Assembly (NCBI GenBank): GCA_943704425.1
Contig: CALSCP010002431.1
Span: 129,347-193,346, forward strand
Direction: 5' to 3'
Length of the DNA stretch: 64,000 bases
Source: Ministeria vibrans ATCC 50519
Taxonomy: Eukaryota; Protista; Filasterea
This document shows, piece after piece, positions 1-35,685 of the stretch (positions are counted from its first letter, which is position 1; each line of letters begins with the position of its first letter). The position numbers and the translations under genes are program-made. The notes under the pieces were generated by a model. That model had not been told where the DNA came from. It saw only the letters and a list, made by a program, of their open reading frames with translations, and did not search any database.

Positions 1-617
1 GCACGACTGAAACGGAGCGAGCGCTGCTTCAACAGGCACACCGTGCGCTGCAATGTCATTTGCTACGCGTGCCACACACTCGCCGGCCAGCAAAAGGATT
101 TCATTCGTGTGGAGAGCATGCTGCAAGGCCAAGGAAACAAAAGCGGATGAGGTAAGGGTGGGGGACAGTGCAGAGAGCACACACTGACTCACCTGCTTGA
201 AGAGCATCAGTGGGTGTGTGTCGGCGTCCGCTTCGTTGAGGCGTCCAACGCACAGAAGAGCATGCCCTTGCTGCCATGCGGCCGTTGCGCACTCAAACGA
301 GCAATAGGGAATGCCGCAGCCTGGAAGGAGAGGGAGACAGCGAGTTGAATCGCCGAACGCACGCGTCAAAAAATAAAACACGCTTTGCTTCTTCTACCTC
401 CTCCGCAAGGAAAGGTTTCCGTTGCAACGTCGCACAGGGGTCGGAGACACCTGGCGCAGCCCCGGACCAGCGCCTGGTTGTGAAGATGCTGCATTGAGGC
501 GAGAGGGATCTCCGTCCACACTTCAGTGCCGGCCGGAAGATCAGTCGCTGAAAACACGCAGCGGCCCTTTCCTGGGCGTTCTTCAATGACTATCGAGGAT
601 GCGGGGAGTTGGGACAT
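1..617 (-). CDS. SET-MYND histone lysine methyltransferase (SMYD5/ATXR2-like), 5' part; runs off the window
   Basis: ATG at 617. N-SET motif ERPGKGRCVFSATDLPAGTEVWTEIP is followed by a split MYND finger, CARCLRPL...GCGIPYCSFECATAAWQQGHALLC, across short GT-AG introns. Confidence 0.8.
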
Positions 618-1037
618 GGGAAAGAGCAAAGTGAGAGTGATCAGACTGATCTAGAATGAAAATAGTCAAAATAGTCAAAATAGTTATAAGTTAATACTTA
701 AATTGTCACATCTACTGATCTGCTCTGGAGTAGACCAACACGGTCTCGCGAGATGAACTCATGGGTGGCCGATCAGGTGGCTGGGACATTTGATTGGGCC
801 ATCCCAAAATTGATGCGGTTGTGCGTTCACGAGAAAATCGACCGCACAGCCGAAAAACCCGTGCGCGAACTCGATCGACCGTACGTATGACCCATTTGAG
901 AGGGTGCTTGTTGAGCGACGCGTGAAAACAGAGTGTTCACCAGTCTGCATTTCACGTGCAAGCCCCACTGGCCTGTCATCCCCAACACCCCATCGCCCCT
1001 CGTTCCCTCTGCGCGTCGCCCCTACCCCCATTGCCCC

Positions 1038-1901
1038 GATGGGATGGATTGCACTCTTGCGCTGTTGCACGACCCGCTGGCGCTTCCCAGTGTGCCAGAA
1101 TGAGCACCAAAGTCAAATATCTCGTGTTCTTGTAGGCTCAACGTCTCCTTCTCGGGCGCCTGCTTCATGGGTGTCTACGGACTCGGCGTAGCCACGGGAC
1201 TACGCGAGCTTGACGCGGAGCTTGGTAGTTGCGGTGGTGCGAGCATTGGCGCACTCACGGCAGCCGGACTGTTAGGAGGTAGGCAACGAATGGAAATTAG
1301 TACGTCTTTTGAACTCTTTCTTCACGCTTTGCCAGGCGCCGATTTGGAGCGAGGCAAAAAAGCAACGTGGGTTATTCTGGAGGAGGTGCGGGAACACCCA
1401 CTGCGTGTGTTGTGGAATGCCAAGGCGCGTCTCAACACGTTCATTGACGAGCATATGCCGCCAGAAGTGGACGTTGAAGCGCTGGCGGGACGTCTCTTCA
1501 TCTCGGTGACGGCCCTTCCGTCGGGACGCAACCACATCATCCACGAGTTCCCCCACACACAGAGCGTGCGCGAAACCATCGTCGCCAGCTGCACCATTCC
1601 CGTGCTCATGGGCATCCCCCCACTGGTCACCAAGCACACCACTAGCACCGCATCAGCATCACCCTCATCATCCCCTCTGTGGTCCATGGATGGCGGCTTC
1701 ACCAACAACCTCCCGTCTCACCATCACTCCCACCCCACCGTCACTGTCACTCCGTTTCGCTCTCTCCACCCGTCCGCGTCCATTGCGCGCGATGACATTC
1801 CCCTTTCGTATGCCTTCCGTCCGCCCTCCGAGTCCGTCTGCGACGACATCTTTGCGGCCGGCTGGAGTGATGCCGAGGCCTTTCTCAAAGAGCACTGTTA
1901 A
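1038..1901 (+). CDS. Patatin-like phospholipase/triacylglycerol lipase (PNPLA2/4-like)
   Basis: Gly-rich SFSGACFMGVYGLGV, nucleophile motif GASIG and DGG motif. The main exon begins at the acceptor at 1135; the first exon is tentative. Confidence 0.85.
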
Positions 1902-1941
1902 AAAAAAGTCATTGTTGTACATTTTGTGTGTGTATGTGTTG

Positions 1942-3042
1942 TTAGACTGTTTCGTGTGTGATGGAGAAGTCGGGGAGTGGCCTGTTCTGCGGGCGATTGG
2001 AGTGGGGGAGAACGTAGCGGAGGAGGTGCGGAAGAAAGAGAAGAGACGCTATGGAGGAGAGGGTGTCAATGACGAAGACACGCGAGCGAAGAATGAGAGA
2101 GCGCAGTGGGGAGGGAGGGGAGGCGCCGTTGAGGTAGAGGGCGAGTTCAAGAGCGTCTACGCTTGTGCTTGGGGCTGACGAGGAGGAAGAAGAGGGAAGC
2201 GGAGCGTCTTCGTGTGTGTAGTAGTGCGGAATGGAGCGTAGTGTTTGAAAGTGTTGCCGATGGTAGAGTGAAATGGCTGCTTGGTTGGTGGCCATGACGT
2301 GCAAAAAGATGACTTGCGCTTGAAGGGCACTAGCCTGTGCGGAGATACGTTGAAGCAATTGTGAGCCTAAACAGAAACACAATAACATAGAATGAGAGAG
2401 AGTGGAGGGTGAGAGAGGAGAAAATTTGAGAGTTTGAGAGTTTGAGAGAGAGTGGAGGGTGAGAGAGAGTGGAGGGTGAGAGAGAGAGTTTGAGTTTGAG
2501 AGAGAGCTTGAGAGAGAGAGAGAGAGCTTGAGAGAGAGAGAGAGAGTTTGAGAGAGAGAGAGAGTTTGAGAGAGAGAGAGAGAGTTTGAGAGAGAGAGAG
2601 AGTTTGAGAGAGAGAAGCACAAAGTGATAGAGCAATAGAGAGAGAAGCACAAGGGGACAGGAGTAAGAAGCACAAGAGAGGGATTGGTACCGAGTCCCAG
2701 GCGTCGAAAGGAGGGGACAACACAGAGTGACATGATGTAGGCTATTAAAGGATCGGTTGGTTCAGCGGGGTCGTCCAGGAGGATGGCGACGGTGCGCGAG
2801 TGGCGACTGCGCGGCTGAAGTTCAACGGTGACTGCGCCGACGACGTATTCGCTCGGTCCGTACGTCGCGACGAGTCCAAAGAAGGACGGGTTGGCACCGT
2901 CGACAAGCGTGTCAAAGAACTCCTTGGGGTATGGCGTGGCAAGGCAGTCGGCGTGGATGCGCTCGAGTCTCTCTCGGTCGCCACTCGCGACAAGGCGCAT
3001 TTTCACCTCGTCGCGGTCCCCAGACTCAGCTTGGACGGACAT
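1942..3042 (-). CDS. NAA60: GNAT N-terminal acetyltransferase, NAA60-like
   Basis: AYIMSLCVVPSFRRLGLG acetyl-CoA motif, IFLHVMATNQAAISLY, IPHYY and an amphipathic C-terminal tail. Intron at 2367-2690. Confidence 0.8.
   Translation of the reverse strand: MSVQAESGDRDEVKMRLVASGDRERLERIHADCLATPYPKEFFDTLVDGANPSFFGLVATYGPSEYVVGAVTVELQPRSRHSRTVAILLDDPAEPTDPLIAYIMSLCVVPSFRRLGLGTNPSLVLLTPVPLCFSLYCSITLCFSLSNSLSLSNSLSLSQTLSLSQTLSLSLKLSLSLSSSLSNSNSLSHPPLSLTLHSLSNSQTLKFSPLSPSTLSHSMLLCFCLGSQLLQRISAQASALQAQVIFLHVMATNQAAISLYHRQHFQTLRSIPHYYTHEDAPLPSSSSSSAPSTSVDALELALYLNGASPPSPLRSLILRSRVFVIDTLSSIASLLFLPHLLRYVLPHSNRPQNRPLPDFSITHETV
2395..2645. repeat. (GA)n-rich compound microsatellite in the NAA60 intron
   Basis: Repeated gagagagagagagtttgaga units. 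Confidence 0.9.
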
Positions 3043-3185
3043 GCTCCAGACAAACACAAGTCGGTAGTCGGTGTGCCCAGAGCAAGCGACTGTGGCGCTA
3101 CGACAAATGTTTGAGTTTTGAGTCGCGATCAAAAACCAAAATAATTGAAATCACTGAACAAAGTCAAATTTCTTGATTGTAACGT

Positions 3186-5842
3186 ATGGGAAAAGAGAAA
3201 CAGCAGGCGGCAGCGGCATCGAGTGCATCGTCGTCTGCGGACGGGGGTGTGGCGTCGCCCATCTTGCCGTCGGCGTCAAACGTCTCAACCCTTTCGTCTG
3301 CCCCCATGATGCTGAGCATGCTCACACTGCTGGCCTTGGCGACGCGGCTTGCCCAGCTGGCGGAACCGCACTGGATTGTCTTTGACGAGGTGCATTTTGG
3401 GGGGTTTGCCAGCCGCTACATCCGCGGCGAGTACTTCTTCGACGTGCATCCCCCTCTGGCCAAAATGCTGCTTGGCGCCGTCTCGTACCTGGCCGGCAAC
3501 CAGGGGGACTTCCTGTACGAGACACTGGGCCACGACTACACGACCACCCGCGAGAATTACGTTGCGCTGCGTGCCTTTTGTGCGGTGCAAGGGGCGGCGC
3601 TTGTGCCGCTGATGTATGTCATTGTGACCAGCGTGCTCGACCGCGCTGTGACGCGCATCACCGCGCAGCGTGCCGGTCTTTTTGCCGCCTCGTTTGTGCT
3701 CTTTGATACGGCTCTTGTGACGCAGTCGCGGTACATTCTGCTCGATGCCTCGCTGCTCCTCTTCACCTTTCTCACGGTCGCCACCCTCGCACGCTTCTAT
3801 GTTGTCTCCTACCAGAACCCTTCGGGTTGGTTCAGTACACACTGGTGGCTCATGCTTGCGCTTACAGGCATCTTCATGGGGTGTGCACTTAGTGTCAAGT
3901 ACATTGGTCTCTTCCTGGTTGCTCTCGTCGGTCTCTACACCATCTGGGACCTGTGGCAGCTGCTCGGCGAACCCACAACGCGTGTCTCCGACTCCCAAAT
4001 GGGCCAACACTTAGCCGCACGCGCCCTCACTCTCATTGTGCTTCCACTCGTCGTATATGTTGCCCTTTTTGCCGTGCACTTGCACGTTCTACGACACTCG
4101 GGTCCGGGCGATGTCTTCCATACTCCCCGTTTTATTGCAGGTCTTGAAGGCAGCTCAGTCGCAAACGTAAAAAAAAAAAAAAAAACACCTCCCCAGATCA
4201 AAATTATACGCTGGCCGCCAGTTCATGGTTCTCATTTTTGTTTCATTTTTTTTTGTTGTTGTTGTAGATGACGCAAGCACAGCCGTATCACATCCGCTAC
4301 GGCTCACGCATTACACTGCGCCCGTCGTATCGCACTCAAAAGTGCTATCTGCACTCCCACACTGCGCGCTATCCTCTCCACCACAAGGACTTTGATGCGA
4401 CGACCAACACGACCAAGGAGCGTGGAAGTAGTACACTGCAACAGTGCACATGCTACGAACACAACGACGTCAACAACTGGTGGACAGTGCTTCCACTTAG
4501 TGTCAACACCTCGGAACCCTTCAATGTAAGCGAGCCCGAGCACATGTTTCCCAAGACGGGCGATTATGTGCGCCACGGCGACCTTGTGCGTCTCCAGCAC
4601 ACACAGACACTGGGCTTTTTGCACACACACAATGTGGGTGCGCCCGTCACGGCTACTCAGCAGGAGGTTGCGGCAATGCACGAGCGTGATGGCACTGCCT
4701 TCCCGCCCCAGCTCGTGTGGCGTCTTGACTTTCTCGATGGGTTCTACTGGCATCCCTTGTACACACGCGTGCGTCTGATAAGCACACACAACCAGCCGTT
4801 TGTGCAGGCCATTGTCGAGGAGCACCCCGATCGCGCCCGGTTTGTCTCGGAGCACCCAGTGCATCTGGCACTGACGGACAAGCGAATGGACGAGAGTGCG
4901 TTTAACCAGCTTGAAGTGAGTGCAGCGCGTTTCGACACCACTGGAGGTGGCACAGCGGATGTGTGGCACGTTGAAGAGCATCTCAAGCACGTCGGAGAAG
5001 ACGATGGTGATGCTGCTGATCAAGTGTGTCGCGGCAAACCCACAATGGGCTTTTGGGAGCGATTTATGGAGTCGCATGTGGAAATGCTTNNNNNNGAGTG
5101 AGAGAGAGGAAGGGAAAAGAAACTAGGTGGTAGAGACAAAACAAAAGTGATGGAGAAAGAGAGGCTGAATGGACTGTGTTGTGTAGTCTGTGCCGTCTGA
5201 TTGGCCCTTGTTGCGTCGCGGGGTGGCGTATTGGCAGAGCAAAGACGCAAACCGACAAGTCAGAAGAACAACTAAGCTTTTAACAGATATTTACATAGAT
5301 TTTGACACTCGTGTTGTGTTCAGGTGTATTTTTTGGGGAATCCGCTCATTTGGGGTTTGGGTACCATTGGGCTGTTTTTCGCGCCCGGTTGTCTCGGCGT
5401 TGCGCTTTTAGCAGTGCGCCGAGGTCGTTTGGTTCTTTCCGGTACGTAATTTGAATTATGGTTGCTACTGAAACATGCTTACTTCTTAAATAATTTAGAT
5501 GAGCTGAGTCGCACACTCATTTCGATTGGCCTTCCCTTTGCGGGTTATTTACTACACTACCTTCCGTTCTTCCTGATGGAACGACAGCTGTTTCTTCACC
5601 ACTATTTACCCGCACTTTTGTTCCAAATTGCACTGCTGAGTGTGCTTCTGGCGCACCTGAGTGCACTTCTACGACTGAGTGGCTCGTCGCATGAGGCTGT
5701 GCTGTTTGCGTCGCTTGCCCTTGCCGCCGCCCTTGTCTTTGCCGTGTTTGCCCCGCTTGTCTATGGCCTTGACCTGACACCCCATCAGATCCGCTGGCGC
5801 CAGTGGAGGGCCTCGTGGGACCTGCGGGTCCTCGCTTTGTGA
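3186..5842 (+). CDS. POMT1: Dolichyl-phosphate-mannose:protein O-mannosyltransferase (PMT4/POMT1 subfamily)
   Basis: VFDEVHFGGFASRY...FFDVHPPLAK, MIR repeats (YLHSH, LVRLQHTQT) and C-terminal MERQLFLHHYLPAL. Several introns; N-gap at 5090-5095. Confidence 0.93.
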
Positions 5843-7133
5843 GAAGAGGCGCTTTTTGTGTATACAACGAACTAAGAATGTTTAATATAATAGACCTAGA
5901 AGACTTTTCTCGCCGTAAACCGTCAAATATACGACTGCGATAGGACTTCATAATATATTTGTTTCGGTATGTGTTGGGTAGAAGCGTGTTTTTTGTTTTA
6001 CCTATATAGATGAATAAAGAGTGTGAATCCAATTCTTTCTCTGTATTGATCAGTGAAAATGAAGTAAAAAAACGCCTAATGACATGGCCAGGGCGCGTCC
6101 AAGTCGGCTCCACAGGGCCGGAGTTGATGCCTGTCCAGGGGGCCATGGAGTCTAGTATGTATTTTTAGAGACTGTGCTTCCCACAAGTTGTCGCGACTTT
6201 TGCCAACTTTTCGTAAACTTAGGTTTTTTTGATAAGCGGCTTTTGTTGGGCGAAATCCTTTTTGATATACTGATCACAACTGTGTTGTGTTGTGACTAGC
6301 ACAAGAGCGCCTGAGATCAAGCAAAAGCAACGGAATCCAATAACAGCGACGTGTGGGAGTAGTGTCGAAGGGCCTTCTCGTCTCAGCACTTCGTGTCGGT
6401 GGAAATCCAACAAATTGTTTAAACATTATTTTCATTCTTCTATTTCTTCATGTGCTAATTGTGCTTTTGTTGTGTGGTCACTGGTCACTGACTCACTGTA
6501 TAACTATAAAACCATTGAATTAATAATAGCATGTTGCTCATCCAAAGTATTTTCGTGGTTATTCATCGCCCGAGACACCAAACATCACCTTAAAACAATA
6601 CACACAAAGTTAAAAAATGGTTAAATTGACTGATCAGTTCATTCAGTTGACAGAATGACAGTTCACTCATCAGTCATCACTTGACAGTTGACAGTGAGTT
6701 GACACTCGTAAGGATTCAGAAGTCTAGTATCGAATGTGAGAAAAAAAAAAAAAAAAAAAAAAAAAAAAACAAACAAACACTGGCTTCTTTTTCATTGATC
6801 GATTCAGCAAATTGAATTATCCTTTTTAGAGTCAGCCTTTTTTCTCTTTTCGTCTTTACCGCTTGTGTTAAACACTAGCACCCTTACTGGTCACGTCTCG
6901 GGGTGTCTGGGGTCGGCCAGTGCGGCTGAGCCCCGGATGCGCCGGCGTGGGGGGCGGGCGGGCGTCGTTACCGGGGGGACACGACGGGGCCCGCTCGGCC
7001 TCCGCAGTCATCTTTAACATGCGCCTGGCATGCCTAATGATGTGCTGCCTGCCATGCTTGACTGCGTCCGCCCATTTTTACCTGTGAATTGAGAAAGTTT
7101 GCTACGTCCTCCCAAAACCCCAACGGCAGCACA

Positions 7134-8483
7134 ATGGACATGAATGTACGTCGTAGCAACTGCCAGTGGGAATCCCCTTGCCTCCTTTGTGCAAGCGAAC
7201 GCGCCCTTGTTTGTGTGTCACAGCGAAAAGAAAATTGAGAGACGAAAAAAAGAAAAAAAAAAATAATAAGCGAACCAACGGATAAAACGCAAATAACGCT
7301 GTCCGCCGTCGTCTCTCGGGCACTGCACGTGCTCTATCTGATGTGTCAATGGGGCAATGGCCAAGGGCGCTACTGAAATGCACCAGAACTCGTTGTTGAC
7401 TTTTTTTTTTCTCTCTCTCTTGTTTTGATAAGGAATGTATTTTGCGCTGCGTTGACCAATACTTCGATGCTTTTGTCGAGGTGACCAACGACCAAGTCTT
7501 TCCTACGGTTGTAAGTCATTTCACGAACAGAGAACGAGCGAGCGAGAGAGAGATTGAGAGCGATTCTAAAGCGTTTTCGCCAAGAGAGCCAATTTCGAGG
7601 TTGATGCAGTTGAACCGCTGACTTGTCATTTTTTTTTTCTTCAGCTCTATAATTTTAGCGCTGAGATAAGACTTGACGGGCCTGAGATAGAACTCGACGA
7701 GTCTAGCCCAATGGGACTCGAAGGGCTTATCGAGTTGGCCGTAGGGACTGAGAGTGACAGTGCTGCATCGCCAGCGTGCAGTGAGAGCACGGAGGAGGAG
7801 GATGCGTCTTCGATCGCGTCTTCCGACTCCGCCATCTCCCACTCGGACAATCACCGCAAGGCGTCCAAAGTCCACAAAGCACAGTCAGCCAGTCTCTCCA
7901 AGGAGGCACTTCAAGCGGCAGTCAAGGCTCGCGCGGCCCTGGGCGACCTCCCGTCCGCCCGTCGCGCCTTCTACGACGCCAAACTGACCCTCCCACGCGT
8001 CCGTGAAGCTCTTGGCTTCCCTTACGTCCAATGTGCCTCCGCCTCCACCACCCTACTCACCCCTAGCAACTTCGACCAGGTACTATTTTTTTTCAACTCC
8101 TCTTTTTTTTTTCCTTCAGATTCTGACCTTTTTTGGTTTTGTTTTCTGTTGTTCTCCAGCTGTCCCAAATGGCGCCCGACCAACGTGAATTATTTTGGAA
8201 GGGCTGCTACAAACTCTGGCACGAACGCGATCTGTCCAACACGAGGATTCGCAATCGTGTGCTCAAAAAGGATTTAGGGTTCAGCAAAGACCAAGTAAGA
8301 GCTAAATTCTATAGTGATATCAAATCCACACGTTGACATTTGTGTGTGTGTGTGTGTGTGTGTGTTTAGGTAACAAGCCTCGTTAAGCTCGTCAAGAACT
8401 ACCGTAATGGCACGTCCTGCAAAAAACGCGCTTTTCATGATCTTCAGCTCATCCTCTCGGCTCTGCACAGCCGACAGTGGTAG
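7134..8483 (+). CDS. Hypothetical multi-exon protein (acidic/Ser-rich middle, basic helical C-terminus)
   Basis: Phase-consistent exons 7134-7145, 7433-7510, 7645-8079, 8160-8293 and 8370-8483 give MDMNECILRCVDQYF...SALHSRQW*. No family recognised. Confidence 0.55.
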
Positions 8484-25139: not shown

Positions 25140-28100
25140 TTACAATCGCATACTCACTTGACTAAAGCCAGACGCAAACCGCCCGCTACTCTTGGACTCA
25201 ATCACGTCAAAATCATCACACACTTCGTCATCCTCTTCCTCTTGATCTTGTTCGTCGTTGTCCCGACCCACGCGCTCCGATGTCTGCTCCTCCAGATCAT
25301 CGTTTGCATCTTCATCCCGCTCATGTCGATCCTCCTCCTCCTCCTCATCGGCTCCATCAGACGTCCCGCCACTCATCACCACTGTTGCCGACGGTTGGTA
25401 ATCCACTAGTGACTCGGTCTGACTGAGCGTCGCCACACTCGACGCGTGTAGCACCAGGTTCACATTGAGCGTGGTGTGCGACGACGATGCCAGTGTGATG
25501 GTGGTCGTTGCCGAGACAGTGTCCATGCGTGACGTGGACTGTTCGTGCATATTCTCCAAGTCAGTGGCAATCGACACGGGCGTGCCATGCCGCTGAAACA
25601 GCGCTGTCGTGGAACTGCTGCTCTTCCTGATGGGTGTCTTGGAGGCCGGAGTGCGCTGCGTGAGACCCAATCCCAACGCGGAGCCTGTACGTGTGCGACC
25701 AAAGGCACGCGTGCCCACCCGAGAGGGTGTGCGCGACAAGCCGTTGCGACGCACGCGCTTCTTCCACTCCTTGAGACCCTGGCCGCGCACAACGACAAGC
25801 AAGGTCAGAATGAGACCCTGCGCTGTGTTGCACACGGTAAACAGATACCAGAAGACGAGGGAGCCCGTGAGGCCCAGGTAGGCAAAGAGCCAGGTGAGCC
25901 CAAGACTCATGACCATCGAGAGGTACATGAGAAACTCACCCCAGCTACCCGCCTGGTCGGCGATGCCATCCTGGGCACGACGGCCCTTGGCACGACGAAG
26001 CTCAATGATACTCGACACAAAAAAGCCAAGGTTGACGAGCAGCAGCACAGCCATGGGCGCCAGGAAAGCCCCGTAAAGACCGTTGCGCTCGGCCAGCCAA
26101 CACGACGTCGACGATCCGCGGAAGCCCACCCCCTGGTGTGTTCCATAGTCAACACCAACGGCAATAGCCGTCAGCAGCACAGGGGACAGCCAGCTCACCA
26201 GCGCATACGTCTTGAGCGACGTGGGCGTGCCAAAGACGGTGATGAGCGAGAAGCGCAGGTTATGGCCAATGCAAGCGGACCAAAAGAAGGACCCAAAGAT
26301 AAAGTAGTAGAGCAGAATAGCGACAGCGCGGCAGCCGGCCGTGTTACTGGTGCGCTCGATGCCCACAAGGAAGACAAGGTTGAGTGCAAAGATGGCAATG
26401 CTCAGGTTGAGCAGCATAATCATAGGACGGGTGCGCAGTGCCACAAGTGCATAGAAGGACACCCAGAAGACCACAATAAACACCATACTCAGCACACAGC
26501 CAAGGTAAGTGAGAACCTCTTGTGCAACAGCGTGGGAGTCCGACAGCGTCGACGTGTCCAAGCCGCCCAGCACCGCAAACGACGTCAAGTGATTACACGC
26601 ACACGTTGTTGTGACGGCCGTCTGCGATACAAGCCGACAGCCAGTGGTGCTCCACTGCTCGCTTGACGTGTCCCAAAACACACACGACCGATTGGCACTA
26701 AGCACGCGGCTCGTATGCGGCACTACCATGACAAACTCATCGGGAACACTCGCGAGTGACTCGCCCAAGTCAAAGGTGAGCACTGCACTGTTGCGCAGTC
26801 CACTGTCGGCACCGTCCGCCTGCTGGAACGGATTCGCCTTGTAGGTGTAGTAGCGACTGGTGGTGCACGAGAGGGGCGAGAGGAGGGCAAATGCACTGTC
26901 AGGCGCGTCAAAGAGTGCGGCCGAGACTGTTGTAGTGAGTGTCGACGACGCATAGGCTCGCGGCAGCGACGTCGTGTCGGTCGCGCGCGCAAAGTCCATG
27001 TTGAGCGCCGACAAGGCAATGCCGCGCGTCGTGTCGCATGGCATGAACAACACAATCATGTCGCCAAAGGACTCAATCAGATCAACGATGCGGCTGCCAA
27101 AGCCAACGGCTTGCAGCGCAGCAATGCTCGAGGAGGACACAAGGCCATTAAGCGCGGCAAACACATTGGTAGACACGGTGGTGTTTTCGCTGGATTGCAC
27201 AAGAAGAAAGTCAAGGATGGACGTGAACGACTCAACCACAATGGTCGCGGCCGCTGTGCGGTTCTCGACCTCGAGCCAGTCGGCATTCGCAACGACCGTC
27301 ACCAGATTGACCGCGTTGCTCAGGGCTGTCGCGTCGTTTGTTGTGGGTGTTGTGCTCAAGGTAATGAGCGCACACGCAAAGGTATCGGCTTGAACACTGA
27401 GTGCACCCACGGTGATGCTAACCACGTCTACATAGGCAGTGGTACACAGTAGATTGTTGTTTTGCAGCGTGACATCGCGACCTACAAGTGCGAGAGCCGT
27501 GAACGCTGCAAGACTCAACAGTTGAGCATTGTTTTGCAGCTGCACATCGAGCGTGACGGACGTGAGCACGGCCGACGCTGGCGCATTGCCAATCTCAACG
27601 AGTGCGGCACAGTTGTCCACCACGAGGCTGCCCACCAGCTGGGTCACCGACGACAGCGGCAGTTGTACAAGTGTAGGACAGGCACGCACGCTAATGTTCC
27701 CCGCGTACACAGCAGAAAGGGTCGACAGAAAGGACAGGGTGAGCGGCGCGTCGGTGACGTGCGCCGACGTACCACACGCGTCAATGACAAGGTTGGCATG
27801 GGCCAGAGGCGCCGTAAAACCCGACACGAGGGTCAAATTGGCATTGGCCACGAGATCAAAGGAATCGTGGACGGTCGTGAGCGCTATAAAGCCCGTGACG
27901 GTGGTCAGTGCATCGTTGCCGCTGATGTTAAGACGCTTCAGCTCGTCTACGCCAGTAAGGTCACAGTCGATTGCGAGCAAGGCCGGATTGTCAACAATGT
28001 CAATGGTAAGCTGGGGTGAGCCCACGAGCGAGTCGCTGAGGGCACACGAGACGGCACGCCGACGCGAGGTGGTCACGTCAAGCGACGAGAGTGCCACATT

Positions 28101-30371
28101 GCCCGCAATGCGTACGGACGTCAGCGCACCCAGAGGCAGCGCGTGTACGCCATAGAGGTCCACGAGCACATCATTGTTGGTGACTTCAAGAGCACCGATA
28201 CCCGTGAAGCGTTCGAGACCCGAGGTGGACGCCAGCGAGTCGAGGTTGTCGATAGTGAGTGTGCCACCGTTGAGATTCTGAGGCACGCCAATGTCCACAA
28301 GCGATTCCACCGAAGGAAGGTTGCGCAGCGTCACCGAGAGCGCGCCGCCGTCAAGGCGACCCACCAGGCTAGAGAGCTGCGTCAGATTTGTAAGCGACGG
28401 ACAGTCGGCAATCTCAATGTTGCCACCGACGTAGCGCAGGCCGGCCAGACCCCTAAGACTCCGCATGGCTCCGTTACCCGAAATGCGAATGCTGCCCGAG
28501 ACATTCTGAATAGCGCTAAGACCCACCAGGTTGGCCAGTTGCGCATTGTCGGTGATGATGAGGTCGCCGTTGACTCGATCAATGGCGCTATTAAGGCCCG
28601 CCGTGCTGAGTAAGGTGGTAGTGCCGTCGATTTTAAAGTCACCGGGAAACGACTGGAGCATGGCAAGCGACGAGAGGTCCGATTCGGTGGTGGTGCTTGG
28701 CACAACAACAGAACCTGCAACAGTGGTGCAGAAGGAGACGTCACTCAAGGCGGACTGGGTGCAGTCCGAGGCGCACAGGGGACCCGAAGTAGTCGCGGTG
28801 CAGGTACAATTGTGGCCATTGACCAAATTGGTACAGGTGCCGCCATTTTGGCACGGTGACGAAGCGCACTCGTCCACATCAACGTCACACAAGACACCGG
28901 TAAAGCCCGGAGGACACACACAAAGGTAGCCATCTATCAGGTCGACGCAGTGTGTCGAAGGGGCGGTACATGGGCTCGACTCACACTCGTCTAAGTTTTG
29001 ATCGCAGTCGGTGCCATTGTAGCCGGCGGCACAGTCACACACGTCCGTGTAGCGACTGGCGACTGTGCCACAAGGACACTCGCAAGTGTACGAGTTGATA
29101 CCGTCGATACACTCGCCACCGTTGAAACACGGCGACGACATACACTCGTCCACGTTGGTCTCGCAAAAGGATCCGGTGAATCCTGGGGGGCAAGAACAGT
29201 ATGAATTCACTGTCTGCCCAGCGTTGAGTTGCTCGGGGGACGCCAAGACGGGACCTGTCCAAGTAAACTCACTGAAATACGAACCGGTCCCAGTCAACTG
29301 AAGCGATTTGGTAGGGGAGCCCTCACCCTCTTCGACAGGCATAGGCGTACTGTCGTACGTGACACCGTTGAGCACCACCGACACATTTCCTTCGTAGGAA
29401 ATGAAGCAAGGCACCAACAGCTGCTCGTTGTCCACAAGAATGTATCCGTCGCGAGGCCCATTGCCGTTGCTGCCATCATTAAACGAGCGTGCACCAAATA
29501 TTGACCCTGGATCCGCATCAATCAGCTCACCATCCGTGTTAAACACTTGTCCCAAGCTTCCAAAATACTGGAATCGAAAAAGAAAGAAATTATTATTATT
29601 ATTATTATCATTATTATTATTACCACTTTATTTTATTTATACCTTTCCGGTGACAGGATCACTGACAGGCAAGACGGGAGAATTGACGGCTATAATTTGG
29701 TAGTGAGAAAGGTCAAAGCCGACGGGACCGGCAATTTCAAATTTCTCATTGCTGTCAGACCCGGCATCGGAGTAGTGAATCTCGTTGAACCAGATGGGCA
29801 AAGTGCCGGCAGGAGCGGTGGTGGTACCACTGTTGTGGCACACAATGGTCTCACAGCGGGACCCACCATAGCCCACGAGACACAGACATGAGAATGTGTT
29901 TAGGCCGTCGACGCAGGTTCCACCGTGATAGCAGGGTGAGGACACACAGTCGTCGACGTCGAGCTGACAGAGCGACCCGCTGAGGCCGGTGGGACACGAA
30001 CAGAAAGGAAGCAACGTGAGACCGGGAGTGGGCATATCGCGTGAGTGTGCACTGGGTCCAAACCAGGTAAAGTCCAACTGTGTACGACCCGTCCCGTTAA
30101 TCTGCAAAGTGGATGTGTCCGGTTCGTTGTCGCCAGCAAACACTCCAATATCAGTGCTGTCGTAGACAACACCATTGAATACGGCGGACAGCTTACCCTC
30201 ATACGATATGATGAGGGGCTCAAGAAGCTGCTCGTTGTCCCACACAGCGAGTCCGTCTCGCGGCCCATTCTCAATCGAGCCCATTACAAAAGTCCGCCCG
30301 GCTACATCGGTTCCACCACCAATGTCAATGGTACCCGTCAAGGGCAGCACTTCGCCAAACGTCGTCAAGTA
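25140..30371 (-). CDS. Adhesion GPCR: lamin-tail-like domains, EGF repeats, L-domain/LRR-like solenoid, GAIN/GPS and 7TM; 5' end unresolved
   Basis: GPS CVFWD...WSTTGC...CACNHL|TSFAVL; 7TM motifs ([29 protein letters not shown]); Ca-EGFs ([23 protein letters not shown]). Intron at 29568-29642. Confidence 0.92.
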
Positions 30372-31013
30372 CTAACATACAATTCGGAGTAAGAAAAAAA
30401 AAAAAAAAAAAAGTTAACGAAAATGGCTTCTCGTTGCATTGGCGACATAGCAATCATTGGGGATAGAGCCAAAGTCGGATGCAGACATGCGTCCTGGACA
30501 GCGAAAGAGAGAAAATGGCGGTGGGAGTGGGAGAGAGACGACAGGTTGACGACGACGAGTCGTTTCGTGACGGAGGGCGCCAAGGGGGCGTTGCAGGGGC
30601 CTGCGGGTGTCCCGCCCCAGTGCACATGTGTGCAGGCATGCGGCGCACGGCAACGCAGCGTGTCTTTGCACGGCGTTCCACACTGCACGCTCTCTCACAA
30701 AAATGGCCCATTCACAGAAAAAAAAAAAAAAAAAAAAAAAGAAAAGGGAAATCAAAAACGGTTCGGCAGACGCAGAATAGAGCAGCTGCGCGCAGAAGAC
30801 AACCCGTCGATGCAAGGCAAGTCGCGGAGAGAGCGAAACGGGTGCGTGCCAGTACGGGAATGTCGGGCAAGAGAGCAGAAAAGGGACTCGTGAGGGTCTC
30901 CTTTCGGCATGAGCACACACCCCCACGCTCGTCTGCGAAAAGGGCAGGGCCGCAGAGTACTCCGCCCATTGCACACACAGCTCGAGGCTGGTTGCCGACG
31001 CGCGACGTTTGCT

Positions 31014-31054
<41 letters not shown>

Positions 31055-31369
31055 CTGCGGTGTGTACCGATGGCGTCTCCAATGGCCCGTACGGGAATCA
31101 GCAAGTCTCCTTGGATGCCGGCTGCACCGGCCGCGCGCTCCTTGTCGTGGCGGGGGGCTGGGATGGCTAGAGGGACGCAACGGGGGAGGCGGTGAGTCGC
31201 ATGCGGCATCGGAGGGGCGCGGGGGGGCTGCAGGAGGGCTGTGGGAGACGAGGGGGGGAGGCAGGGGAGATGCGGTACGTTTCGACATGGTCACTGATGA
31301 AAATGTTTATTCCTTCTAATCGATCATTCGATCTGATCAGTCTTTCTTTCTTTTTTCATTTCACACAGC

Positions 31370-34300
31370 ATGTCGCGCAGGAGGATAAAAGCTGTCCAGA
31401 AAGAGGACCCTTGTAAGAGTGGGGGGAGTCGGTGAATCCAGGAAGAGACTGATCTTCTTTTTTAAATTCGTTCACTCTCACATCCTCAGACGACGAATAC
31501 GGACGAAGCTACGACGAGGACGCTGCCATGTCTCCCAGCTCACGTAGGGTGTCTCTTTCTCTCCCTCTTTCCCTCCTTCCGTTGACGCAACAACATATCT
31601 GTTGCATAACGTCACACACACAACACAAAAGAGAGAGAGAGAGAAAAAAAAACGACGACTCCGTTTGACTCTGTTTCCTTCTCCAGACGCCTTCATGTGG
31701 AACGGCGGCGATCATTTTGATGACCATTCCATGGCCTCCTACCTCCCTGGCGGAGACGGAGGCGTGGCAGAGCCGGGAAATGGCGATGGAGACGACGAGG
31801 AGGCGGACGACGACTTTGGTCGTGACGCAGATCCGGCGGCAGACTACACGCGACCCAAACTCAGCGACGAAGACCTCGCGTGCCTTCTGAGCGCCGTAGA
31901 GAACATTGAATCATGCATTCCGGCGATGTATCCGTCGCGCGTCGTTGAAATGACTGTTCTTCGCTTCAACTTTGACAGTGAGGCGGCGCTCAACGCTCTC
32001 ATCGAACACGACGTTCGGCCGTACGCCCCGCCACAGCCGACCCCCGCGCCAGTCCAAGTAGTACCTACTACTCGTAAGGAACAGAATCGACCTAAAGAGC
32101 CACTCAAAATCACTACTGCACGTAAGCAAAAGAACAAAAGAGAGGGAGAGCGCCGAGAGCGAGAGAGAGAGCGGACGCCGTTTTTTTTCTTGGTGATATT
32201 CTTCTTGAGGGTACTGTCCTCTTATACCTTTTCTTGATGTGCCCTTCCCCCCTTCCCTCTTTCCCCCCATCACCCATTTGCTAAAGGTGGAGGGGTGAGT
32301 GGAGAAGGAGCAATCACGCCAGACTCGTCGTTTGGCTATGGTGTTGCATGTCTTCTCGATGATGATGATGATGGCGACAACGACGGCACGAGTGGCAACA
32401 TCACAATCGGCATCAACTCTACTGGTGCTATGCAAGCATTTCCTCCTGGGCTATCTCTAAGGCCTCAACCACAACCGCAACTACAAGAGCAGCAGCCGTT
32501 GGGTGTTGCGTCGCCCAGCGTCACTGCTGCGCCACCTCTTGTCGCACTCAGTGTTGCTGCTGCACCATCGTTGAGTTTTGTTCCGTCTCTGGTTGCTGCG
32601 CCTTCACTGACGAGTGCGCCTTCACTGACGAGTGCGCCTTCACTGACGAGTGCGCCTTCACTGACGAGTGCGCCTTCACTGACGAGTGCGCCTTCACTGA
32701 CGAGTGCGCCTTCACTAACGGCTGCGCCTTCGCTCACCGCTGCGCCTTCGCTCACCGCTGCGCCTTCACTCACCACCGCTGCGCCTTTGCTTACGGCTGC
32801 GCCTTTGCTTACGGCTGCGCCTTCGTTGACGGCGGCGCCTTCGCTTACGACTGCGCCTTCACTCACCACCGCTGCGCCATTTTTTACGGCTGCTCCATCA
32901 CTCACTGCTGCACCGTCTCTCATTTCCGCACCTCCACTCAATACTGAATCCTCTTTCACTACTGTCGCACCACTCGCGACCAACAACGCGGCCTTTTCAA
33001 ACGCACCCGTCATCTCACCGTCGCTTGACCTCACCCGTGCACCCTCACTCTTTGCCCAAACGAAGACTCAGCCGCTCTCCAATGCCACCTTACCAACGGC
33101 CGCCACTACTATTCCGTCCACCAACAGCACACCCAAGAGCACACCAAGAGCTCACCCTCAGCCCTCTTCGTCAAATCGTCTCGCGTCAGTATCCCTTGCT
33201 CATCCCTCTCGTCTTGCTCGTTCCCTCGCCAAACAACCTCTTCGAGTTTCACCGTCACTTGCTCACTCCATTTTTTCCCCCTCCTCTCCGCCTGCTCTCT
33301 CCCTCACATCGTCTCTAACCGACGCCCCCTTTGATTTTACCACCCCGTCTCCGGACGATCTCATCGCCTCCCGCCAACGCCACGTAGGATCCGTCGCAAC
33401 AGCAACTTCCTCCACCACCGTCAACGGCGCAGCAACACCTGCGACCGTCACTTCCGGCACTAAATCTGCTTCACCCATCACTCCGAGCGGCTCTTCCAAG
33501 AGTCTCAGTCGAAAGGCATCTGCTGCTGCTGCGGTGGCAGCCGCAGCAGCAGCCGCAGCCGCAACAACAACATCGCAGTCTACAGTCGCAGACGGTGTTG
33601 CCGATGACATGCGCGCCATGGGCTTTGGCACCGAAGCAAACTCATTCCTGTCGCGCGCCCGTTCCAGCGGCGCAAACACCCCTACCAACGGCACACCGCC
33701 CGGTACTCCAGGCACTCCGGGTACTCCCGGTGGGGGAAAAAAATCCAAAGCACTTCTCAACATCTCAGACGAGTTTACAAAACGTTGCAAAGAAGAGAAG
33801 CCCTCGCTCAATCTGGTCGTTGTTGGTACATCACACCTTTTGGATGCACGAACACACTCACACACACTTTCACTCATAGGACACGTTGACGCGGGCAAGA
33901 GTACTCTGATGGGTCATTTGTTGCACGCCCTGGGCGAAGTAGACCAGCGTGCCATGCGCAAGTTTGAACACGAGTCGTCCAAGCAAGGAAAGGGCTCCTT
34001 TGCTTATGCGTGGGTCTTGGACGAAACCAGCACTGAGCGAGAGAGGTATGCTTATACCGTACAATTGGAAAAAGTGATGAAAGGTGCATTGTTGTTCTCT
34101 TAGAGGAATCACTGTTGATGTTGGAATGAAGTTTTTCCAGACGGAACATCGCAAGATCACTCTGTTGGATGCACCCGGTCATCGTGACTTTATTCCAAAC
34201 ATGATTACAGGCGCAGCGCAGGTATGAAAGTGCGATTTTTCTCTTTCTGTTTCTTTCTGCTTGTCTCTGTCTTTCTTTCTCTCTCTCTCTGTCTATCTCT

Positions 34301-34775: not shown

Positions 34776-35685
34776 TTTACTTACACACTGATGGATAGAA
34801 TTGGTGTCGTGGTACAGCGGCCCTACGCTTGTGCATCTCATTGACCAGTTTCAACTGCCGGAGCGTATTGTGGATCGACCACTGCGTGTAAGTGTGAGTG
34901 ATGTGATCACACAGGGCAACGGTGTGCTGGTGACGGGCAAGGTGGAGGCAGGGGGTGTGCAGGTGGGTGAGACGGTCAAGGTGATGCCTATGGGCGACGA
35001 AGGGGCTGTCAAAAGCATTGAGGTTCATCGCTTGCCCGTGCGCTTTGCTGTCGTTGGCGATGCCGTCACTCTCCACATCTCTCCCATGGATATAGTGCGT
35101 GTCAGGTAAACGAACCATGCACACTGTGCAATATAGCTTTTGTCTCCTTATTTTCTTTTGTGTACTGTTGTTTTTTTTTTTTTTTTTTTNNNNNNNNNNG
35201 ACTACTTTGCGACGGTCCATCCCAAGGGCCTTTCCCGCTCTGTCCTTGTCCATGCAGCATTGGCTCTGTTGTATGTGTTCCACACGCTCCTATCCAGCCG
35301 GCGCAGATCATTCGTGCGCGTATTGTTGTCTTTGACATTCGCGAACCCATCACTGTCGGATCACCGGTACACGAAGAAGAGGAGAGAGAGAGAGAGGGAA
35401 TTGAATCTCACCATTTTGTGTGATTAGGTTGTGTTCCACTTTCAATCGTACAACGAAGAAGCAACGATGAAGAAACTGGTGTCGCTGCTGGACAAAACTA
35501 ACGGGGAAGTGATCCAGAAGCGACCGCGGTGCCTGACCAAAGGGCAGACGGCGCTAGTGGACATCCAGCTGCCTCACGCCATCTGCGTTGAACCGTATCG
35601 CGTATCGCGTGAGCTTGGTCGGTTTATGTTGCGTGCGGGAGGTCGTACTATTGCGGGTGGCATTGTCGAGTCTATTCGTGATTGA
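31370..35685 (+). CDS. HBS1L: HBS1-like translational GTPase (Hbs1/Ski7)
   Basis: N-terminal [15 protein letters not shown] and HBS1_N helices; [54 protein letters not shown]. Confidence 0.93.
32595..32935 (+). repeat. Coding 18-nt tandem repeat encoding (A/S)APSLT, roughly 18 units
   Basis: gagtgcgccttcactgac repeated, degenerating at both ends. Confidence 0.9.
34708..34773. repeat. (GT)n microsatellite in an HBS1 intron
   Basis: Direct inspection. Confidence 0.9.

Follow-up and report, generated by a model that had tools for sequence, protein, structure and literature searches.

The window analysed here is a stretch of 64,000 nucleotides from the filasterean protist Ministeria vibrans ATCC 50519 (assembly GCA_943704425.1, contig CALSCP010002431.1, positions 129,347 to 193,346). 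Its minus strand carries, at 30371-25140, the gene of an adhesion-type G-protein-coupled receptor (GPCR) of a eukaryote, composed of two long open frames with a 75-nt intron between them. The frames run for about 1,715 codons without a break, to a stop codon at 25140-25142. Our subject is the part of this receptor in which modules related to the lamin tail domain (LTD) of bacterial extracellular nucleases appear to be set inside EGF modules, in repeated composite units that we write as EGF[LTD].

Read in the direction of the gene, the locus opens with the LTD-like second part of a unit called B (30003-30371, 123 residues). This part starts at a phase-0 acceptor (ag at 30373-30372) and matches the profile built from the second parts of this genome with E=5.2e-48. 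It is followed by a C-terminal EGF half of 12 residues carrying Cys4, Cys5 and Cys6 (29967-30002), a motif seen in the translation and found again after every unit of the paralogues. A complete six-cysteine EGF (29853-29966; Pfam EGF E=7.6e-9, hEGF E=1.1e-5) then separates unit B from unit C.

Unit C begins with an N-terminal EGF stub, CHNSGT (29823-29840), of the form Cys2-x-N-x-G-T and without Cys1 and Cys3, followed by a linker of 9 residues. Next is the LTD-like first part, with 51 residues (29643-29795, IWFNEIHY...TGK), recognised through BLASTP matches to the modules of a bacterial protein, P0001, and through paralogues in the same genome. A spliceosomal intron of 75 nt (29568-29642; GT at 29642, AG at 29568), in phase 0, with 16% GC and in-frame stops, leads to the second part of 123 residues (29199-29567, YFGSLGQV...NSY), which is 46% identical over 114 residues to P0001 (E=1e-16). 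The whole LTD-type module of unit C measures about 175 residues, and a C-terminal EGF half of 12 residues closes the unit (29163-29198), with weak Pfam matches to the C-terminal halves of EGF profiles. A previous sequence-only reading of this DNA had described such a layout, with an EGF, a stub, an LTD-like domain, an EGF half and a second copy; all these elements are where it placed them, and its coordinates, motifs and splice phases are correct.

The remainder of the gene is that of a receptor. An array of further EGF modules (28665-29162; Pfam hEGF E=6.9e-19, EGF E=2.5e-14, and EGF_CA) is followed by the start of a receptor-L-domain-like region (28416-28577; Recep_L_domain E=6.6e-6), a GPS motif (26568-26687; GPS E=4.3e-14) and a seven-transmembrane (7TM) domain of secretin/adhesion type (25809-26519; 7tm_2 E=1.1e-28). 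Read directly, the GPS stretch is intact: it has its four Cys and two Trp, the canonical HL|T cleavage site and a start typical of a tethered agonist (TSFAVL). With a GPS and its HL|T site, where cleavage is predicted, adjoining a secretin-like 7TM domain, the window gene is, by its sequence, an adhesion-type GPCR of a eukaryote. The best outside match of the 7TM region is a sea-urchin GPS+7tm_2 receptor, at 35% identity. Pfam gives EGF, Recep_L, GPS and 7tm_2 only, with no nuclease domain (EEP or Endonuclease I) in the receptor gene. The GC content at third codon positions (GC3) is 0.57-0.59 in the LTD-type exon parts (29199-30371) and 0.65-0.71 in the EGF, L-domain, 7TM and tail parts (25143-29198), a small difference on a small sample.

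As for the identity of the insert, the Pfam LTD model (PF00932) gave no match at E<=10 on either exon half of the window, the halves being searched separately, which weakens the test. The same model had no match at E<=1 on the 103-residue first part of a paralogue on contig C2121, and NCBIfam had none on the window exon halves or the paralogue pieces. A whole-genome scan with PF00932 left the receptor and paralogue loci unmatched and gave one weak, unrelated match on contig C1670. Three more searches were empty: PDB sequences with the second-half profile (nothing real), a homologue search with the second half of unit B within its 243-residue exon (nothing), and a single-protein search for related loci in the genome contigs (no confirmed relative).

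With the second part of unit C as query and long proteins allowed, a word-indexed search returned six bacterial proteins, five of them carrying PF00932, mostly alongside Exo_endo_phos or Calx-beta. The best match is P0001, whose cluster includes the NCBI “lamin tail domain-containing protein” of Qipengyuania aurantiaca. This protein consists of three tandem modules and passes PF00932 with E=3.3e-21 at residues 5-97. By BLASTP, the first part of unit C aligns to residues 9-46, 168-205 and 343-384 of P0001 (34-42% identity, E=4e-9 to 7e-6) and the second part to residues 71-163, 218-327 and 398-501 (42-46% identity, E down to 1e-16), so that both exon halves fall in the correct order within each of the three modules. 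The insert is homologous over this region to proteins that pass PF00932, and the Pfam model spans about the first 60% of the bacterial module.

Furthermore, we built a profile from seven second parts of this genome and searched it with HMMER against 1.84 billion representatives. A total of 2,543 proteins matched at E<=1e-3, and 1,225 at E<=1e-10. The top matches are long bacterial proteins with two to seven tandem modules, accompanied by Endonuclease_1, Exo_endo_phos, bacterial Ig/cadherin-like domains, dockerin or type-IX secretion tails (Por_Secre_tail). An AlphaFold model of a short bacterial relative, P0147, reached pLDDT 84, and its top eight structural matches are the Ig-folds of lamin A/C and lamin B (Z 5.5-6.5, root-mean-square deviation 2.2-2.7 A over 84-92 residues). 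These matches cover the first ~100 residues of the P0147 module, and ~60 further residues add three strands. By transitive homology, these matches support the sequence-only proposal that the insert is an LTD module of bacterial type, such as extracellular nucleases carry.

The position of this module relative to EGF follows a strict order. Every unit of every paralogue (eight or more) has an EGF N-stub (C-x-N-G-G-T or a variant), then the sandwich, then C-x-C-x2-G-aromatic-x-G-x2-C, and in first units a hydrophobic leader runs directly into the stub. A whole EGF never follows a sandwich without a C-half in between, and no sandwich comes without an N-stub before it, so the two halves can complete one EGF only across the insert. 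The stub CHNSGT aligns with the N-half (CQNGGTC...) of an ordinary, uninterrupted EGF at the same position in the paralogue on contig C2145 and in P0023, a metagenomic protein. The insert lies where Cys3 and its hairpin would belong, which supports the claimed position inside an EGF module. At the junction where the EGF halves sit here, the aligned bacterial arrays have a short plain linker. The weak Pfam matches of the trailing cysteine motif all fall on the C-terminal half of EGF profiles (e.g. EGF_2 positions 17-32 of 32). All units conserve the contexts of C2, C4, C5 and C6, none has C3, and internal units also lack C1.

A model of the single 243-residue exon (second part of unit B, EGFs, first part of unit C; 15-row alignment) gave pLDDT 73 and pTM 0.74. 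Such a pTM is high for otherwise loose pieces and, as far as a model goes, fits the B and C parts packing as one sandwich. With this permuted chain, Foldseek returned nothing beyond EGF matches, and the best VIA-align Z was 4.2, with EGF or generic sandwich matches only. A putative bond between the Cys2 of the stub and Cys4 would close the insert as a loop.

One could also see here a linear chain, with sandwiches and EGFs in a row and with the stub and the Cys4-6 motif as decayed remnants or linkers that form no closing disulfide. The EGF-half segments reach pLDDT of only 55-76 in the exon model, and the bacterial relatives are plain tandem arrays with short linkers, so that module ends need not be adjacent. 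However, the order of stub, sandwich and C-half is invariant in all eight or more units, and the placement of C-halves before a full EGF and of N-stubs before a sandwich is sensible only for one split module. There is also a precedent in laminin, where the L4 domain lies between Cys3 and Cys4 of LE modules (PMC5338690). We regard the linear chain as quite unlikely.

The rest of the genome (29.7 Mb, 2,860 contigs) was searched with the second-part profile. At E<=1, the module subtype is confined to the window locus, contigs C1258, C2145 and C2121, and three tiny contigs, which makes four gene loci plus fragments; further EGF[LTD] units, for which a genome search had been proposed, do exist. The gene on C2145 (7.6-kb contig; 2172-5324, plus strand) has three of them, the second cut into several small exons, and near-identical pieces of this gene occur in the environmental metagenome contig of P0023. 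The paralogue on C2121 (46000-55999 region, 3669-8230, minus strand) is of secreted type, with a signal peptide and two or three EGF[LTD] units, of which one is broken by an N-run. It also contains EGFs, a weak PKD match and repeats of the DUF285 family (PF03382, E=3.7e-191 with six stretches matched), which owes its name to Mycoplasma proteins. Since the same units are carried here by a secreted protein without a GPCR, the sequences suggest that the EGF[LTD] unit may be a portable surface-recognition cassette, not tied to GPCRs.

In terms of spliceosomal introns, the units show three different sets of positions. The phase-0 site of the window is common to units B and C, both C1258 units and unit 1 of C2145. 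Unit 3 of C2145 reads straight through this site and has two other introns in its first part, and the C2121 units have a phase-1 LTD intron ~45 residues downstream of it. Because these last units lack the site of the window and have others, introns were gained more than once. An intron gain followed by duplication, as had been suggested, accordingly describes the window units, the C1258 units and unit 1 of C2145, and fails for unit 3 of C2145 and the C2121 units. The intron of unit A in C1258 (790-1260, minus strand) is ~470 nt long, against 75 nt in the window, and is filled with (CA)n and CACGCA-type microsatellite.

Unit B is present in the window by its second half only. Its acceptor is in phase 0 (ag|TAC at 30372/30371), at a Tyr homologous to the unit C site, and the second parts of B and C are 41-44% identical to each other. 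This likeness, as that of the module to P0001, goes far beyond chance. The repetition and the shared acceptor position hold for both window units. No match for the first half of unit B was found elsewhere in the window, and the stretch from 30372 to the next gene, on the plus strand near 31600, holds neither a start codon nor a leader. The upstream second copy of the sequence-only reading is therefore confirmed for the half that ends in a half-EGF, and its first half is not in the window.

A possible counterpart lies on C1258, the start of which (1-2262, minus strand) encodes, behind a hydrophobic leader, one complete EGF[LTD] unit and an EGF, and then an orphan first part. This is the only orphan first part in the genome, and it is followed by an AAG|gtacag donor and a T-run at the contig edge. 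A T-run is also found in the window just upstream of the unit B acceptor (30372-30420), and the two orphan halves, the first part on C1258 and the second part of unit B, have each diverged further than any other of their kind. The C1258 edge is probably the missing first half of unit B together with the 5' end of the receptor, and the full receptor probably has three units. The window contig, C2431, would then probably be misjoined or gapped near window position 30400.

If instead the window copy were a 5'-truncated, non-functional duplicate, the half module at 30003-30371 would be a relic, a reading favoured by the absence of a first half, start codon and leader upstream of 30372. Yet the frames are open for their ~1,715 codons with GPS and 7TM intact, and the unit B acceptor site is intact too. 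Moreover, C1258 supplies, in the matching orientation, an orphan first half that runs into a GT donor and a T-run, and the window has its own T-run upstream of the acceptor. A truncated duplicate is in our judgement very unlikely.

Two side observations concern the window sequence. Between the receptor acceptor and the next gene, at 30700-31060, there are several A/T homopolymer runs of 20-40 nt. N-runs in the window are short, with 29 N in all and X in open reading frames near 35100-35200 and 45500.

Regarding the origin of the module, we examined the 150 best representative clusters of the 2,543 profile matches for an EGF half. Only three have one after the module (P0023, P0031 and P0079), and these are near-copies of the C2145 and C2121 paralogues; the source of P0023 is an environmental metagenome assembly, that of P0031 a Logan read-run assembly. 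The other 147 have bacterial architectures or no EGF half. When 167 second parts are placed in a maximum-likelihood tree, the nine rows of eukaryotic type group as a single clade (SH-aLRT 99) on a stem of 0.58 substitutions per site. The long stem branch and the several later intron gains argue for a single old entry. The simplest reading is that a bacterial-type module was acquired once, long ago, and that intron gains and duplications came after, and a transfer from bacteria is, on these sequences, plausible but not proven.

Overall, we favour, with a probability of roughly 70%, a reading in which the GPCR ectodomain is made of repeated composite units, each with an LTD sandwich of the bacterial branch standing in an EGF in place of the hairpin between Cys3 and Cys4. 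What is left of the EGF (Cys2 before; Cys4, Cys5 and Cys6 after) would clamp the base of the sandwich, and the sandwiches would hang sideways from a continuous EGF rod. The module type would have entered the lineage from bacteria once, long ago, and spread by duplication of units and of genes. The sandwiches may act as ligand-binding or adhesion surfaces. A pull on them could separate the GPS-cleaved N-terminal fragment, bare the TSFAVL tethered agonist and activate the 7TM domain, as in animal adhesion GPCRs.

Several points weigh against this reading, in whole or in part. The LTD membership of the window module is supported through transitive homology, its own pieces falling below the Pfam threshold. 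The first unit of C1258 and that of C2145 keep an extra upstream Cys without an obvious partner, so the claimed loss of both Cys1 and Cys3 stands for Cys3 everywhere and for Cys1 in internal units only. The 5' end of the gene is outside the window. The 167-row tree contains no supported bacterial sister to the eukaryotic clade, and the protein library carries no taxon labels. The nearest ESM Atlas cluster to 29199-29567 (minus strand) has a score of 0.95 and 55 members and is labelled Eukaryota, most commonly Bacillariophyta, which we take as a lead only. Lastly, Shewanella ExeM still degrades extracellular DNA when its LTD is removed, and no role has been settled for this domain (PMC6085458).

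For the proposed horizontal acquisition, this means that the distribution and the single eukaryotic clade speak in its favour, and that the missing bacterial sister, the unlabelled library and the diatom-labelled cluster do not. The sequence searches with the exon halves, from which bacterial LTD proteins were expected, did find them, and the phylogeny that was to accompany them gave the one eukaryotic clade and no sister. Other eukaryotes, diatoms perhaps, may hold the same LTD subtype. The representative P0040 (JGI metagenome, two Cys per module) may be diatom-type.

These same data can be read as vertical inheritance, with the LTD subtype as an old eukaryotic extracellular domain that bacteria share by descent or received from eukaryotes. 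LTD-like proteins that lack lamin features have been reported in a number of eukaryotes (PMC5630835), and the diatom-labelled cluster, the long stem (0.58) with no bacterial sister resolved, the several introns and a GC3 (0.57-0.59) only slightly under that of the rest of the gene (0.65-0.71) would all agree with an old eukaryotic domain. On the other hand, 147 of the 150 best clusters, out of 2,543 matches, are bacterial or without an EGF half, and in this genome the module is restricted to four gene loci and three tiny contig fragments. It is also 40-46% identical to alphaproteobacterial and other bacterial modules, yet unseen by the lamin-centred LTD model of Pfam. We consider vertical descent unlikely, without dismissing it, and keep bacterial acquisition as the preferred origin.

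An assembly chimera, or bacterial contamination joined to a eukaryotic gene, could also be suspected in an assembly that is fragmented (2,860 contigs) and has N-runs. Against this, AT-rich GT..AG introns lie inside the module, the frame runs on into EGF modules on both sides and is fused in frame to GPS/7TM, and the same layout recurs on four contigs and on independent metagenome contigs. Contamination or chimerism is effectively refuted by the spliceosomal introns, the in-frame fusions and the several paralogues, and its remaining probability is minimal.

A more specific idea is that the protist took a DNA- or cell-surface-binding module of bacterial nucleases and that this module, nested in EGF on a GPCR, may sense bacterial prey, biofilm matrix or extracellular DNA and pass the signal to G proteins. 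We put this forward as a speculative suggestion that is probably wrong in this form. If it were true, it would be a pre-animal case of a receptor ectodomain made out of a microbial binding domain gained by horizontal transfer.

Adhesion GPCRs are older than animals, and there is little knowledge of what their ectodomains recognise in unicellular relatives. Part of the ectodomain of the receptor described here consists of a module type met elsewhere almost only in bacteria. Should both the nesting and the bacterial origin be true, the locus would be a clean example of transfer at the level of a domain, after which the module gained introns, was duplicated and was taken up by signalling and surface proteins. 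A small unit that can be expressed would then also be at hand for finding out what this LTD subtype binds, in bacteria too.

When compared to animal adhesion GPCRs that bear EGFs (ADGRE, CELSR), the window protein shares the EGF-rich N-terminal fragment, the GPS with HL|T, the TSFAVL-like peptide and 7tm_2, with 28-35% identity in the 7TM region. It differs in its long receptor-L-like region and in belonging to a unicellular organism. None of the papers found in the literature searched pairs a lamin-tail domain with an adhesion GPCR.

Bacterial tandem LTD proteins (ExeM/NucH-type nucleases, Endonuclease I fusions and adhesin-like proteins sorted by the type-IX secretion system, T9SS) resemble the insert in module length, extracellular location, repeats and 40-46% identity. 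They also have the same motifs in the same order (INE-HYD, NG-PDG, SYEG, SLQL-G-G, F-W, N-GQ). Only this accessory module is common to both, as the receptor has no nuclease or other bacterial partner. Here the module is embedded in EGF, interrupted by spliceosomal introns and carried on a GPCR, whereas bacteria use a plain linker.

The Ig-fold of the nuclear lamin tail (PDB 1IFR, 3GEF, 2LLL) superposes on the core of the bacterial relative with Z 5.5-6.5 over ~85 residues at 15-16% identity. In contrast to the present module, the lamin domain is intracellular, stands on a coiled-coil rod and lacks the ~60-residue C-terminal extension and the motifs seen here.

The closest precedent is laminin L4, found in laminin alpha/gamma chains and perlecan. 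There, a beta-sandwich occupies the Cys3-Cys4 loop of an LE module and the EGF rod stays continuous (PMC5338690), so the insertion site is the same, and the inserted fold again resembles bacterial binding modules. L4 is, however, CBM35-like and unrelated to LTD, and the window unit is hence not a case of L4 in LE. The LE host has eight Cys and keeps all of them, while the host here is a six-Cys EGF without Cys3 and usually without Cys1; laminin is a matrix protein, and the window protein a receptor. The trick itself, a sandwich in the Cys3-Cys4 loop of an EGF-like module, would be that of the L4 domains, themselves still enigmatic. The nested sandwich is thus known from laminin, and what is new is an LTD sandwich apparently nested in EGF, and an adhesion GPCR with a new ectodomain module.

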